DNA of 64,000 bases from Mytilus californianus (lineage: Eukaryota). The translations under genes and the position numbers were made by a program. Of this stretch, positions 13,111 to 19,293 are shown one piece after another. The notes under the pieces are model-generated. The model made no database searches and was not told the DNA's origin. It was given only the letters and a program-made list of their open reading frames with translations. The DNA is taken from the NCBI RefSeq assembly GCF_021869535.1, contig NW_026262582.1, forward strand, positions 53,568,001 through 53,632,000, written 5' to 3'. Within the stretch, counting starts at the first letter, position 1. The number at the start of each line of letters is the position of its first letter.

Positions 13111-13490
13111 CTATTTTTAATTAGATAAAAAAGTATATTTCAATAAAAGGAGTCTATGTTCTCAAGATCATTCAGTCAGCAGACCAACAACATAAATTCA
13201 ACAAAAATATGTATATAGATGATTCTTTTTATCAGTGGTAAATACCTAAAAAAAAAACTGTTCAATGACAGACTGTTCTTACAGTGATCAAATTCAAATT
13301 ATCATTTTATCATATACAGCACAGTATTCAAACATCTGTTTATCTTTTCAGATAATTAAATCTAGGAAATTATACCAAAAAAATTTGTTCAAGTAATGAT
13401 TATTCTAATTACTCTGGAATAAGCAAAATCTAAGTTTAACTTGTGTCATCAGGCAAGCATTTTATGAGAGGTAATTTTGAATGTACTAAC

Positions 13491-13602
13491 CAGGAAACAT
13501 TAGGCATAGGTAGACCAGTGACTTCACAGGTAAATTTGGCCTCTTTTCCATCTACTGCTGACAGGTCTTCAATCTTCTTGGAGAATTGAGGAGCTTCCAT
13601 CA
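13491..13602 (-). CDS. Exon: pre-kinase Ig, N-terminal half
   Basis: 112 nt, phase 1-2; MEAPQFSKKIEDLSAVDGKEAKFTCEVTGLPMPNVSW. Confidence 0.88.
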
Positions 13603-14574
13603 CTAAAATTGTAAATGTTAAAACATTATAACACTTAATTCCTGTTCAGTTTGGTAGTAAAATGAACTATAGGGTTCTACAGTCCACACATTCATTTTAC
13701 AGAAATCAGAGACATATAATACAAGAGATTCGCAACTCTAGTAGAGTCTATATAACAGCCAATGAAATGACGTGGCCATCCGGAAAGCCGATTATTCCGA
13801 TGGATTTATGGGTAAAAACTCGCTATTGTTGTGAAAAAGTTTCTACGCCTCGCGATTTTTCTAATGGATAATGCCGATACCTTTCACAGCTAAAGCATGC
13901 AAGTATATTTAAAAGTTACAAAAAACTAATTCTAATAATTTGTTATTGATAAAATGTGTTCTAATGATGAGATTAATCAAATACAAACAAAATTAAAACT
14001 CGGCACATTTTACTTCACCTCCTATTGCCGTAGAAACCATTTGATCTCCCAATTTTTTTCTTAAAACTTGGAAATATGCTAATAAATATATAATTTTATG
14101 GGGCAGTTCAGTTCAGTTCAGTTATATAATATTCCCAAATGTTGTTTCGTGAAAATAAGACTATTTTCGTAAAATTTGATCCAATAGTGTTTTTTTTTCA
14201 AAATTATCAACAAATGTGGCCATTTTTTCTTATTGATACCCGAAGCCAGCTGTGCTGGTACTATCATTTTATCTCGTAAAACTAGGAAATGTGCGAATAA
14301 ATATTCAATTGTATGGGACTATATTACTCTCAGATGTTATGTCGTGAAAATAAGACCAGTTTCGTAATAAAATGCTCCGCAGGGCGCAGCTTGATACGAC
14401 CGCAGAGGTCGAACCCTGAACAGTTGGGGGAAGTATGGACACAACATTCAAGCTTGATACAGCTTTGGATTTGGATTGTGATTAAATATTTGACACAGCA
14501 TAGGTTTCTAACACAGATTGAATGTGGTCTAAGAACTTAAAAATTTTAAATTGGACATTCACCTATTATGGTCC

Positions 14575-15555
14575 AATATCCAAAATCTAAATACATGGTT
14601 AGATTCAGCATATCAAAGAACCCCAAGAATTCAATTTTTGATGAAATCAAACAAAGTTTAATTTTGGACCCTTTTGACCTCAATGTGGACAAAGTTGATA
14701 ACGGGGCCCAAAAATCAAAAATCTAAATACATGGTTAGATTCAGCATAACAAAGAACCCCATATATTCAATTTTTGTTGAAATCAAACAAAGTTTAATTT
14801 TGGACCCCGATTTGGACCAACTTGAAAACTGGGCCCATAATCAAAAATCTTAATACATGTTTAGATTCAGCATATTAAAGAACCCTAAGAATTCAATTTT
14901 TGTTAAAATCAAACTAAGTTTAATTTTGGACCCTTTGGACCTTAATGTAGACCAATTTGAAAACGGAACCAAAAATTAAGAATCTAAATACACGGTTAGA
15001 TTCGGCATATCAAAGAACCCCAATAATTCAATTTTTGATGAAATCAAACAAAGTTTAATTTTGGACCCTTTTGACCTCAATGTGGACAAAGTTGATAACG
15101 GGGCCCAAAAATCAAAAATCTAAATACATGGTTAGATTCAGCATATCAAAGAACCCCATATATTCAATTTTTGTTGAAATCAAACAAAGTTTTATTTTGG
15201 ACCCCGATTTGGACCAACTTGAAAACTGGGCCCATAATCAAAAATCTAAATACATGTTTAGATTCAGCATATCAAAGAACCCTAAGAATTCAATTTTTGT
15301 TAAAATCAAACTAAGTTTAATTTTGGACCCTTTGGACCTTAATGTAGACCAATTTGAAAACGGAACCAAAATTTAAGAATCTAAATACACAGTTAGATTC
15401 GGCATATCAAAGAACCCCAATAATTCAATTTTTGATGAAATCAAACAAAGTTTAATTTTGGACCCTTTGGACCTCAATGTGGACCAATTTAAAAACGGGG
15501 CCCAAAATCCAAAAACTAAATACACGGTTAGATTCAGCATATTAAAGAACCCCAT
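14575..15555. repeat. Tandem array: 8 monomers of 126-136 bp in a 397-bp trimeric higher-order repeat
   Basis: TTAGATTC anchors at 14599, 14735, 14861, 14996, 15132, 15258, 15393, 15528. Confidence 0.9.
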
Positions 15556-15644
15556 GAAATCAAGAATAAAACCCCATTGAAATTGGTCAAGAAATAAGCA
15601 ATTTATAGGAAGTATCTTCTTTTGCACAATCCTGTGCTATTAAA

Positions 15645-15843
15645 TATTTCTTGCTATTGTGCAATACTGTACAATTGACAATTTCTTGCTATTGCGCAAT
15701 ATTGTGCTATTGGATATTTCTTGCTATTGCGCAATACTGTGCAATTGAAGATTTCTTGCTATTGCGCAATACTGTGCAATTGAAGATTTCTTGCTATTGT
15801 GCAATACTGTGCAATTGAAAATTTCTTGCTATTGCACAATACT
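15645..15843. repeat. 35-bp minisatellite x6
   Basis: ATTTCTTGCTATTGCGCAATACTGTGCAATTGAAG; TTTC anchors every 35 bp from 15647 to 15822. Confidence 0.92.
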
Positions 15844-16014
15844 TTTTATATAATAATTTACACATCCTGTTTGGTGTGTATCTCCTACCATATCATTATT
15901 ATTTGATTTTAAATATAAATCAGAAATAACCAACTTAAAATGGAAAATTTTAAAAGAAACAAAAAAGGAAAAAAAGAAAAAAAGGGAAAAAAAATAAATC
16001 CCCCCCCAAAATTT

Positions 16015-16600
16015 TTTGAACCCCCATTATGATTCATCACCCCCAAACTCAATCCCAGCCTTCCCTTTGTGGTATGGTACCTTGCAGTACAATTTCAGAG
16101 AGATCCATACACTTGAACACAAGTTATTGTCTGGAAACTAAAAAAAAATGTGTTTTTTGGCCCCTTTTTGGCCCCAAATTCCTAAACGTTTAGGGCAATT
16201 ACCCCCAAACTCAAACCCAGCTTTCCCTTTGTGATATGGAACCTTGTAGTACAATTTCAGAAAGATCCATACACTTACACACAAGTTATTGTCATGAAAC
16301 TAGAAAAATGCTTGTTTTTTGCCCCTTTTTTGGCCCCTAATTCCTAAAATTTGGAGGCAATTACCCCCAAAATCAATCCCAGCATTCCTTTAGTGATATG
16401 GAACCTTGTGGTACAATGTCAGAGAGATCCATACACTAACACACAAGTTATGTCTGGAAGTTACAAAAATGCTTATTTTTGGCCCCTTTTTGGCCCCTAA
16501 TTCCTTTACTGTTATTACCATAACCCCCAAAATCAATCCCAACCTTCCTTTTGTGGTATTGAACCTTGTGGTAAAACTTCATAAAGATCCATTCACTTAA
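16015..16600. repeat. ~161-bp tandem array x~3.5
   Basis: CCCCCAAA anchors at 16040, 16202, 16364, 16524. Confidence 0.88.
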
Positions 16601-16869
16601 ACTAAAGTTAGAGTGAGAAAACCAATGTGTCTTCGGACGACGACGACGACGACGACGCCAACGTCATACCAATATACGACCACAAAAATTTTTTTGCGGT
16701 CGTATAAAAATTGATCCAACAGTTATTTCTAAAAATATCAACAAAGGTGACTATTATTTTGTTATTTATACACAAAGCCTGCTATGCTAATTTTATCAAT
16801 CTGTATCGTCAAAACTAGAAATTTACAAATAAATATGTCATATGGGGATATATATTACTCCCAATTATT

Positions 16870-16901
<32 letters not shown>

Positions 16902-17667
16902 TATTAAACTGGCTAAATATTGAAACTGTTCATGGACAAATTTCCTTAAATCAGTTCTTCATTTTTGTGCACTATGAAATTTATAGCCTGCATTTTGTTA
17001 GGCAATTTATTCATTTTTCATTCTGTTTATGGCAAAGTTGTTTATTTTCTGCTATTCTGAAGTCATTGTTTTTTTCTTCTTTTTAGGGTGCCAAAGATGA
17101 ACGAATGCAGTAAATTTACAAAAGGAGTAAAATTTTCCTAGTAAAGGAAACCTTCTGCTGGTCGTAATTTTATGAATGAGCTTCGTGCATCTGTTGTCGT
17201 TTCAGACTACGCTTCTCATTCAAAACATGAACCTAATTCATTTTTAAATTAAAATCGTATTGAGGACATTTCAATGGTGACTGCAAAAGATATATATATA
17301 TATATATTTGATAATAAAAGATTTTATTTACACCAAGGATTTGTATATGTATACATATAAACAATCTAACTTTTAAACTGCCATCTCTTTACCCCAGAAT
17401 AAAAAAGACAAAAACCACTACAAATGATTGTCTCGTGGAATTAAGGTTATAAAATACTTTTTAAATAGTGTCTTCCATGTTTCTTTGATGTATGACCTCG
17501 ACTCCCACTTCAATATTGTGGTTTTTTTTATAGATTTTTTGTTGCTTCAAGGACACACATATCCATCTATGTATGCAGTATTGTCAATTGTTTTTGTTGG
17601 TGGGTCTCTCGCTTATGTCTTCGTCACTTTCACTATCAACAAAGAGTTCGTTATCAGTTTATTCAAC

Positions 17668-17716
17668 CAGAGACATATATACACATATGTGTATATATGT
17701 CGTATATATGTCTCTG
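17668..17716. mobile_element. Minimal P-type remnant or excision footprint
   Basis: 15-bp inverted ends CAGAGACATATATAC / GTATATATGTCTCTG, 19-bp fold-back filler, 7-bp TSD ATTCAAC. Confidence 0.75.
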
Positions 17717-18987
17717 ATTCAACTAGGAATATATCTAACTCGTTACTATTCAGTGTCATCCTACGAAATAAAATCGGAATTTTCCATATTGCGTGCACAT
17801 GAATGAAGCTTTATTCAAATGAGAAATTAATTGTAATTTTCTTAAATATTATTTCTCAATGCACACTTCGAAAATGAAGAAACCATAAATTTACCGACAA
17901 TCATTTAAAAAACAACTCAATGCAAGCCTATGATGAAACTGTCAAACAACACTTAGAAATCAAACATTTACCGACAATCCTACAGAACAACTCAATGCAA
18001 GCCCAATTAATGATAAATATAAAAATAAATAAAATTTTAATAATTTATAAATATCAAGAATAAAAAACAAAGCCTATCATGATTAACAATTAATTAACAA
18101 ATAAATTAAGTTTTTTTTCACATTAATTAATCTTACATTTTGTGAATTGTATTTTTGGAAAGAGAGTTGACACCTGTGGTGTAACAACTTCATGTTTACA
18201 AGATGTCAATTAAAACTCATTTTTTGTAACATGTTCGTGATTTACCTGGTCATCGAATAATTCAAACCTAATATACATGTCACACTGTGAAATTATGTCT
18301 CCGAGAAAGGTGTATATTCAATAGAAACCCATTATGAAACTATCAAACAAAATTAACTCTGATACAATTTATCAAGTGTTAATTATTCAATATAATTTTT
18401 TTTTAATACAATATCAAATTATGTCTCTTTTTCAATAATACAAATCTAAAATCAAAATTCCATTAAGATAAATAATTATATATGAACTCAAATTATTTAA
18501 CTAATTATGATAAATTTAACACTGAAACAGTTTATGTTATGCTTAAACATTGGTCCTTACTTCGAGTACTTTTAATACTTTTATTAATGACTTTATTACC
18601 TAAGGAGATCTCGCGAGGTTTAACTAGTGGCCGCGTGTTTTTACGGGATTTCGCCGAGTTGCGAATCTCTTGTATTATATGTCTCTGCAGAAATGTTATC
18701 AAGATGCAACATTTGATTTAACTATTTCAGCCAATCCTCTACTCATGCTCAACACATAAGAATATGAAATTTCAATATAAAACTAAAAATCTTTTCCAAA
18801 CCAAATTTAGACTTTCAAAGGTAATTAAACCTGAAACGCAAAATTGATTTTTTTATTTTGGTTATAACTTTTGACTAAAAAAGACCTGCTAAGAAATAAT
18901 ACCACATAAAATGAGAGAAGAGAAAGTTGATTCAAGCATCACATATTAGGAGTTTTGGTAATATAACATGACACCTGTAAACAGTAC

Positions 18988-19293
18988 CTTTCTGTTCCCG
19001 GCAGTAAAACTGTTCCGTCTCAGGAGATGGTTCGCTGGCTCCTTCGTCATTGACAGCTCTCACTCTGATACGATATGGAATATCTTCAAACAAGTTATTA
19101 ATTCTGTACTTTGTGTCTGCTATTGGTACTTTGTTAATTGGCATCCATGTTCTACCGGCAACATCTTGACGTTCTAACATGTAACCAATGATTGGTGAAC
19201 CTCCATCATGTTCTGGTGGTTGCCATGACAACTCAACAAATTTGGGTCCAAGTGCTGTGATTTCTGGTGCACTAGGTGGTGCTCCTGGACAAT
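18988..19293 (-). CDS. Exon: Fn3-array domain 46
   Basis: 306 nt; CPGAPPSAPEIT...CREQK. Confidence 0.9.

Follow-up and report, generated by a model that had tools for sequence, protein, structure and literature searches.

A 49-bp insert nested in a transposon of Mytilus californianus is most likely the excision scar of a cut-and-paste transposon. It lies in the 64,000-nt stretch of genomic DNA analysed here (the window). According to the best overall explanation, which we hold with good confidence, an element of a family designated B inserted into an element of its sister family A, was excised through staggered cuts, and left flanks that were closed by end joining. The letters of the window at positions 17661–17723 read ATTCAAC, then the insert (17668–17716), then ATTCAAC once more, which bears out the intact 7-bp TSD of the preliminary description. 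A whole-genome search with window positions 17300–18100 retrieved other copies of the host element, and 16 of them aligned across the scar site. As predicted in that description, a single ATTCAAC with nothing inserted was found in every one of these (16/16).

The insert resolves into a perfect palindrome of 38 bp and a tandem duplication of 11 bp (17691–17701 = 17702–17712). The palindrome itself consists of 18 nt of one transposon end, the dinucleotide TA, and 18 nt of the other end. The perfect 30-bp palindrome noticed earlier at 17672–17701 is indeed present. On the other hand, its interpretation as fold-back filler between 15-bp TIR remnants did not hold, since 18 nt are retained on each side and the filler is better read as the recurrent TA plus the 11-bp tandem duplication. 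Each scar end begins with the same 12 nt as the TIRs of the surrounding element (at 13707 and 18687), again in agreement with the earlier reading; this 12-mer of the TIR tip has 5 copies in the window, as compared to 0.3 expected. A genome search using the insert with short flanks gave no second copy of the 49-bp form and many matches to the 38-bp palindrome. Overall, the window scar is an ordinary and apparently neutral relic nested in a transposon. The coordinates of the features are collected in the table.

Features of the window and of related genomic loci. Plain ranges refer to the window; the other positions refer to the genome or to sampled loci.
Feature	Position	Strand	Remark
Left TSD copy ATTCAAC, 7 bp	17661–17667	.	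Read from the window sequence
Left arm, first 18 nt of the family-B TIR	17668–17685	+	Matches full-length B ends through nt 18
TA dinucleotide between the arms, outside the TIR	17686–17687	.	Shared by 79 identical 38-bp scars
Right arm, 18 nt of the family-B TIR (reverse complement), split by the 11-bp tandem duplication	17688–17716	-	From alignment with plain 38-bp scars
Right TSD copy ATTCAAC, 7 bp	17717–17723	.	Read from the window sequence
Host element, non-autonomous family-A transposon, 4981 bp, perfect 32-bp TIRs	13707–18687	+	Scar nested inside
Scar C13:18931679 near a full-length B end	G000:C13:18931483–18931716
Scar C13:21528289 beside the B copy 21528859–21533402	C13:21528289–21533402
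Scar C24:14862348 near a full-length B end	C24:14861976–14862385		The three scars near B ends are 36- and 38-bp forms
Clustered scar pairs	L003:1504–1618; L035:1689–1817; G000:C1:11970787–11970969
Five P-type domain loci	G000:C35:14211185, C57:23841960, C110:39510728, C121:69837019, C132:103009597		Separate locus C165:50973932

The host element is flanked by the 7-bp TSD CAGAAAT (13700–13706 and 18688–18694). In its family, A, the TIR has 18 nt before GAGATTCG, and the scars of this family behave in the same way as those of its sister, family B. No long ORFs and no Pfam matches were detected in the host element or in 16 other family-A copies, which were examined for a transposase. The occupancy of the site was analysed by aligning the contigs of four public runs to window positions 13300–19100, an alignment that is informative for the outer ends of the host element, the scar site itself being swamped by paralogous contigs. 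A contig from a related species (run X7, record 25) joins position 13700 straight to 18689 and has one CAGAAAT, a clean empty site; in two runs with the same species label contigs run from the unique flank into both host-element TIRs. It follows that the insertion of the host element, together with the insertion and excision nested in it, is lineage-specific or polymorphic. Activity in the germ line, suggested in the preliminary description, is upheld by the presence of the scars in a germ-line assembly and by the absence of the host element from the same site in the sister species. Alternatively, the window scar could have been inherited from the donor copy of the host element.

Between window positions 15000 and 16700 the host transposon also contains three blocks of tandem repeats, whose units measure about 135, 35 and 162 bp. 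In each of the four public runs the word depth of these blocks exceeds that of the remaining element 100- to 1000-fold, indicating that abundant mussel satellites sit inside the transposon. Separately, one family-A copy has a 10-bp duplication within its left TIR (L039:56–90).

The parent family was found by listing sequences whose first 17 nt are those of the scar arm. The TIR of this family B is CAGAGACATATATACACA followed by GAGATTGG, and full-length ends read CAGAGACATATATACACA and then GAGATTGGCAACT, with 31 nt identical. Exact ends number about 76 on the left and 105 on the right; they pair at 4.2–4.6 kb and delimit an element of about 4.2 kb, which supplies the full elements with the scar's TIR that had been called for. 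Examples of full-length copies are G000:C1:33872746–33876954 and C1:45017978–45022157 for family B and C1:78694476–78697967 for family D, described below. The left arm of the window scar matches full-length B ends (e.g., G000:C1:33872746) to nt 18 only: nt 19 is G in the family-B TIR and T in the window scar and in the 38-mer. Judged from this match, the parent of the scar is sister family B and not the surrounding family A, the two families having GAAATCCCGT in common near their right ends. A third family, D, whose ends read CTGAGACTACTATAACACA followed by GAGATTGGTCACT and whose copies are about 3.5 kb long, has 19 nt before the GAGATTGG/GAGATT block. Its commonest scar is of the 19+19 type, i.e., a 38-bp palindrome; family-D arms of at least 16 nt number about 1450, with few full-length ends among those listed. 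In all three families the retained piece stops precisely where the conserved GAGATT block begins; a conserved GAGATT(C/G)G block was noted at nt 19–26.

In three cases a scar lies within 196–535 bp of a full-length family-B end. By our own estimate, about 0.01 such proximities would be expected by chance, and the arrangement looks as if excision had been followed by local re-insertion. At another copy of the host element (L048:1912–1963; G000:C112, about 1602240) we observed the family-D 38-bp perfect palindrome flanked by the TSD GTTTATT. The ends of this family begin CTGAGAC, and the TSD is offset by 4 bp from the ATTCAAC site of the window, which implies that the same 11-bp stretch of host sequence was struck independently by two families. 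A further locus considered as a paralogue of the window site (L002) was rejected, as its surroundings are a satellite of about 80 bp with no relation to the window site. It holds a 42-bp family-B scar at a unit boundary of this satellite (L002:1430–1640), and its TSD is also ATTCAAC.

The genome-wide search for similar sites proposed in the preliminary description was productive: the pattern formed by 12 nt of TIR, 0–40 nt and 12 nt of TIR occurs at 1769 sites, as compared to 0 for the reversed control, and the sites listed display dozens of different junctions and at least three TIR sub-families. In the first 60 Mb of C1 (C1:1–60 Mb), 66 sites were counted in which one or both arms reach 18 nt or more. 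These include 22 exact 18+18 palindromes (10 of family A and 12 of family B); both arms reach at least 18 nt in 34 of the sites and an arm truly exceeds 18 nt in 1. Genome-wide, 1526 arms reach nt 18 and only 62 of them have the G of the TIR at nt 19, most of these being recurrent 18+16 or 18+17 joints in which the G is supplied by the other arm. Arms truly extending to nt 21 or beyond number about 20. Thus, the retained length of the TIR drops sharply after nt 18 in families A and B and after nt 19 in family D, instead of peaking at 15–17 bp as had been anticipated. Limits of 18, 18 and 19 nt are compatible with a cut placed by a motif inside the TIR and not at one set distance.

This drop bears on the possibility that the scar is an extreme internal deletion, produced when gap repair from a sister copy is aborted and the ends are joined prematurely. 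Rare forms that keep 21–32 nt of one TIR could be products of such a process, and internally deleted copies are common in family A, whose members range from 1.6 to 5.2 kb. Abortive gap repair predicts a broad spread of retained lengths, however, and not 1526 arms at 18 nt or more falling to about 20 beyond, so that we consider this origin highly improbable.

The commonest short forms are themselves repeated. The 38-mer (18 nt + TA + 18 nt) is present at 79 exact sites in the genome, each with its own 7-bp TSD, and the 36-mer (18+18 with nothing in between) at 100; a series with 0, 1, 2 or 3 TA units between the arms was seen, and 18 of 20 sampled 38-mer sites are independent. The preliminary description had named many identical copies as an outcome that would speak against excision. 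No second copy of the 49-bp form was found; its 38-bp core, with 79 exact sites, formally touches on that clause. Indeed, one could suppose that the 36- and 38-bp palindromes are mini-MITEs capable of transposing themselves, and that the window copy gained its 11-bp duplication later. The numbers of exact copies, each at its own site and with its own 7-bp TSD, and the unrelated flanks of most sampled sites are what such elements would give, and many near-identical copies with TIRs and TSDs are expected of a mobile MITE. A mobile MITE should, however, also accumulate scattered point mutations and retain the transposase-binding ends. Here, the variation among the short forms is concentrated at the centre, in junctions and fillers, rather than consisting of scattered point mutations away from a few masters, and the arms stop at nt 18 or 19. 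The variety of junctions goes far beyond what one or two masters and point mutation would generate, and in the common variants one arm measures exactly 18 nt and the other is shortened. Furthermore, the same limit applies in three families with different TIRs (18, 18 and 19 nt), always just before GAGATT. The short forms have nothing internal to nt 18, including the GAGATT block, whereas P transposase binds internal sites (PMC7776569). Finally, cuts placed 18 nt inside each end would leave a 36-bp element no duplex to move. Mini-MITEs are accordingly an unlikely source of the palindromes, and the multi-copy 38-bp core is better explained by recurrent repair outcomes.

The copy numbers require one correction. 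The same family-D scar with its flank is found ten times at G000:C1:75609567–75655387 with a spacing of about 4.85 kb, as a passenger of a tandem array, and 38-mer derivatives ride in a repeat with the TSD CCCTATT. Since such scars are carried by other repeats, copy counts somewhat overstate the number of independent events. The mean spacing of scars is roughly one per megabase; pairs in which each scar has a 7-bp TSD of its own, separated by 44, about 75 and 152 bp, are far closer than this.

The palindromes keep changing after repair. At paralogous loci that are 93% identical over 1.7 kb (L004:1501–1548 and L016:1501–1563), different derivatives of the 38-mer occupy the same site: one has gained a 10-bp insertion, the other a 25-bp tandem duplication. 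The 38-mer is plain in further copies of this repeat, from which it follows that such duplications can arise after repair. A family-A 18+18 scar with an 11-bp duplication was also found, at C1:4812554.

The staggered cut, the repair pathway and the involvement of a P-superfamily enzyme are inferred from the scar products; the observed base is the insertion with its 7-bp TSD, the identity of the arms up to nt 18, the abrupt end of the retained sequence and the diversity of the junctions. In the sequence of events that we propose, a family-B element would have inserted into the older family-A element, duplicating ATTCAAC, and would later have been excised. The transposase would cut the transferred strand at the tip of the element and the other strand 18 nt inside (18–19 nt across the families), such that each donor flank would keep an 18-nt 3′ overhang of TIR sequence. 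These two overhangs would be identical and not complementary, and polymerase-dependent end joining would therefore be needed to bridge them. The TA was probably copied during joining from the TATATA tract of the partner overhang, and the 11-bp local duplication could be due to synthesis in the same repair or to later slippage in the palindrome.

The asymmetric products support this scheme. Recurrent forms are 18+13 and 18+8 in family A and 18+12 and 18+8 in family B, as predicted if the terminal A anneals to a T within the partner overhang before being extended; the last retained base is A in families A, B and D. The inserts TA, TATA and TATATA of family B and T and TTA of family A may be short stretches copied from the partner overhang. 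As for the exact position of the cut, the same products may also result from a cut leaving n-1 nt followed by an added AT. No site was found with the full-length element in one copy or individual and the scar in another, the read alignment at the scar site being swamped by repeats. The cleavage of the P type proposed in the preliminary description is thus favoured by the sharp length limit and the varied junctions, which fit a long stagger followed by end joining, while the transposase side of that proposal was not matched, as no P-type transposase was tied to these TIRs.

Which superfamily the elements belong to was approached through their targets and through protein domains. In the window and the sampled loci, an exact 7-bp TSD flanks 40 of 43 short and full-length elements, scars and full-length elements alike. 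The symmetrised target consensus of both classes is GTWNWAC, with frequencies G(0.48) T(0.77) W N W A(0.77) C(0.48). A TSD of 7–8 bp and a palindromic target preference are among the marks of the P superfamily, and long staggered cleavage, a third mark, is suggested by the drop in retained length at nt 18/19. P-superfamily elements also have transposase-binding sites in their interior, subterminal repeats, and a gene for a transposase that combines THAP with an RNase H-like domain carrying a GTP-binding insertion. It is conceivable that the elements are hAT-like and that the palindromes formed by some other route. The TIR begins with CAGAG, a tip that presumably resembles the hobo/Hermes ends, and the second and second-last bases of the target consensus are T and A, as in hAT targets, so that this feature is not exclusive. 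The TSD is 7 bp and not 8 in 40 of 43 elements, though. Moreover, when a hAT element is excised the flanks form hairpins and the TIR is lost entirely, so that footprints made of flank palindromes would be expected, whereas the scars hold TIR tips. No match to the hAT dimerisation domain was found inside B or D copies of known coordinates among the best 150 of 912 candidates scored. We therefore regard a hAT-like origin as very improbable.

As for P-type proteins, the genome has 51 matches to PF21787 and 17 to PF21789, in open frames of up to 893 aa. None of the PF21787 or PF21789 matches lies inside B or D copies of known coordinates, nor does any THAP match in the part of the THAP candidates that was scored. 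There is no TIR of the GAGATTGG type near the P-like ORFs of C1, C2, C24 and C35, and the open segments scanned at a locus beside a PF21789 match (L030) gave nothing. A search with the PF12017 profile for P transposase gave no match, and its control likewise gave none. One degenerate PF21787 match is located 5.5 kb from a solitary B right end (C1:91652227), which is suggestive at best of a link to family B. Five P-type domain loci have near-identical scores and open frames of 393–462 aa, separate loci reaching 893 aa; these near-identical loci look like a young P-like family. Intact P-like ORFs lie at C165:50973932, C121:88886076 and C35:14211185. Taken together, the 7-bp TSD, the GTWNWAC target, the 32-bp TIR and the long stagger lean towards elements that work like the P element, and membership in the P superfamily is likely but unproven. 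Some weight, well short of even, should be given to the alternative that the enzyme moving families A, B and D is not recognisably of the P type. Cleavage with a long stagger (18–19 nt) would then occur in another, undescribed transposase lineage, whose cut would be placed by the conserved GAGATT block within the TIR and not by distance from the tip.

For Drosophila P transposase, a stagger of 17 nt between the two strand cuts and a requirement for binding sites inside the TIR are established (PMC7776569, PMC10983969). The mussel scars are similar to the P footprints of Drosophila melanogaster in that the donor keeps both TSD copies and short TIR tips, the retained length has a hard upper limit, and the fillers are templated or guided by microhomology; the length of the mussel TIR, about 31–32 bp, is also like that of the Drosophila P element. 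They differ from these footprints in the limit, which is 18 nt (A and B) or 19 nt (D) as compared to 17, in the TSD, 7 bp as compared to 8, and in being fixed in a wild genome by the thousand, whereas fly footprints were recovered in crosses. Within the P superfamily, Galileo has a 7-bp TSD and the target GTANTAC or GTAGTAC (PMC4168063), and 1360 also has a 7-bp TSD (PMC3698922). The mussel elements share the 7-bp TSD with both, and their GTWNWAC target is close to that of Galileo; on the other hand, their TIRs are 32 bp long, while those of Galileo are very long and of the fold-back type. In the literature searched, we found no report on the cleavage stagger or scars of Galileo and 1360, or on such scars in molluscs. 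Like MITEs and the BuT5-type partners of P elements, families A, B and D are multi-copy and have conserved ends and no recognised transposase domain, as assessed from ORFs against Pfam for family A and from match coordinates only for families B and D. Unlike those elements, the 30–50-bp forms have no subterminal sequence, and to our knowledge they are far below the size of any known mobile unit.

Nothing in the chemistry of the P element is odder than its 17-nt staggered cut, and we know of no enzyme other than that of the fly for which it has been mapped. In the scars described here, several thousand excisions in a mollusc have been recorded by nature. For three related families the position of the cut can be read from them to the nucleotide (18, 18 and 19 nt), as can a spectrum of germ-line end joining, which comprises blunt-like joins, 1-nt microhomology, templated TA and local duplications. 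Whether the long stagger is conserved beyond flies, and what positions the cut, thereby become questions that can be tested without genetics.
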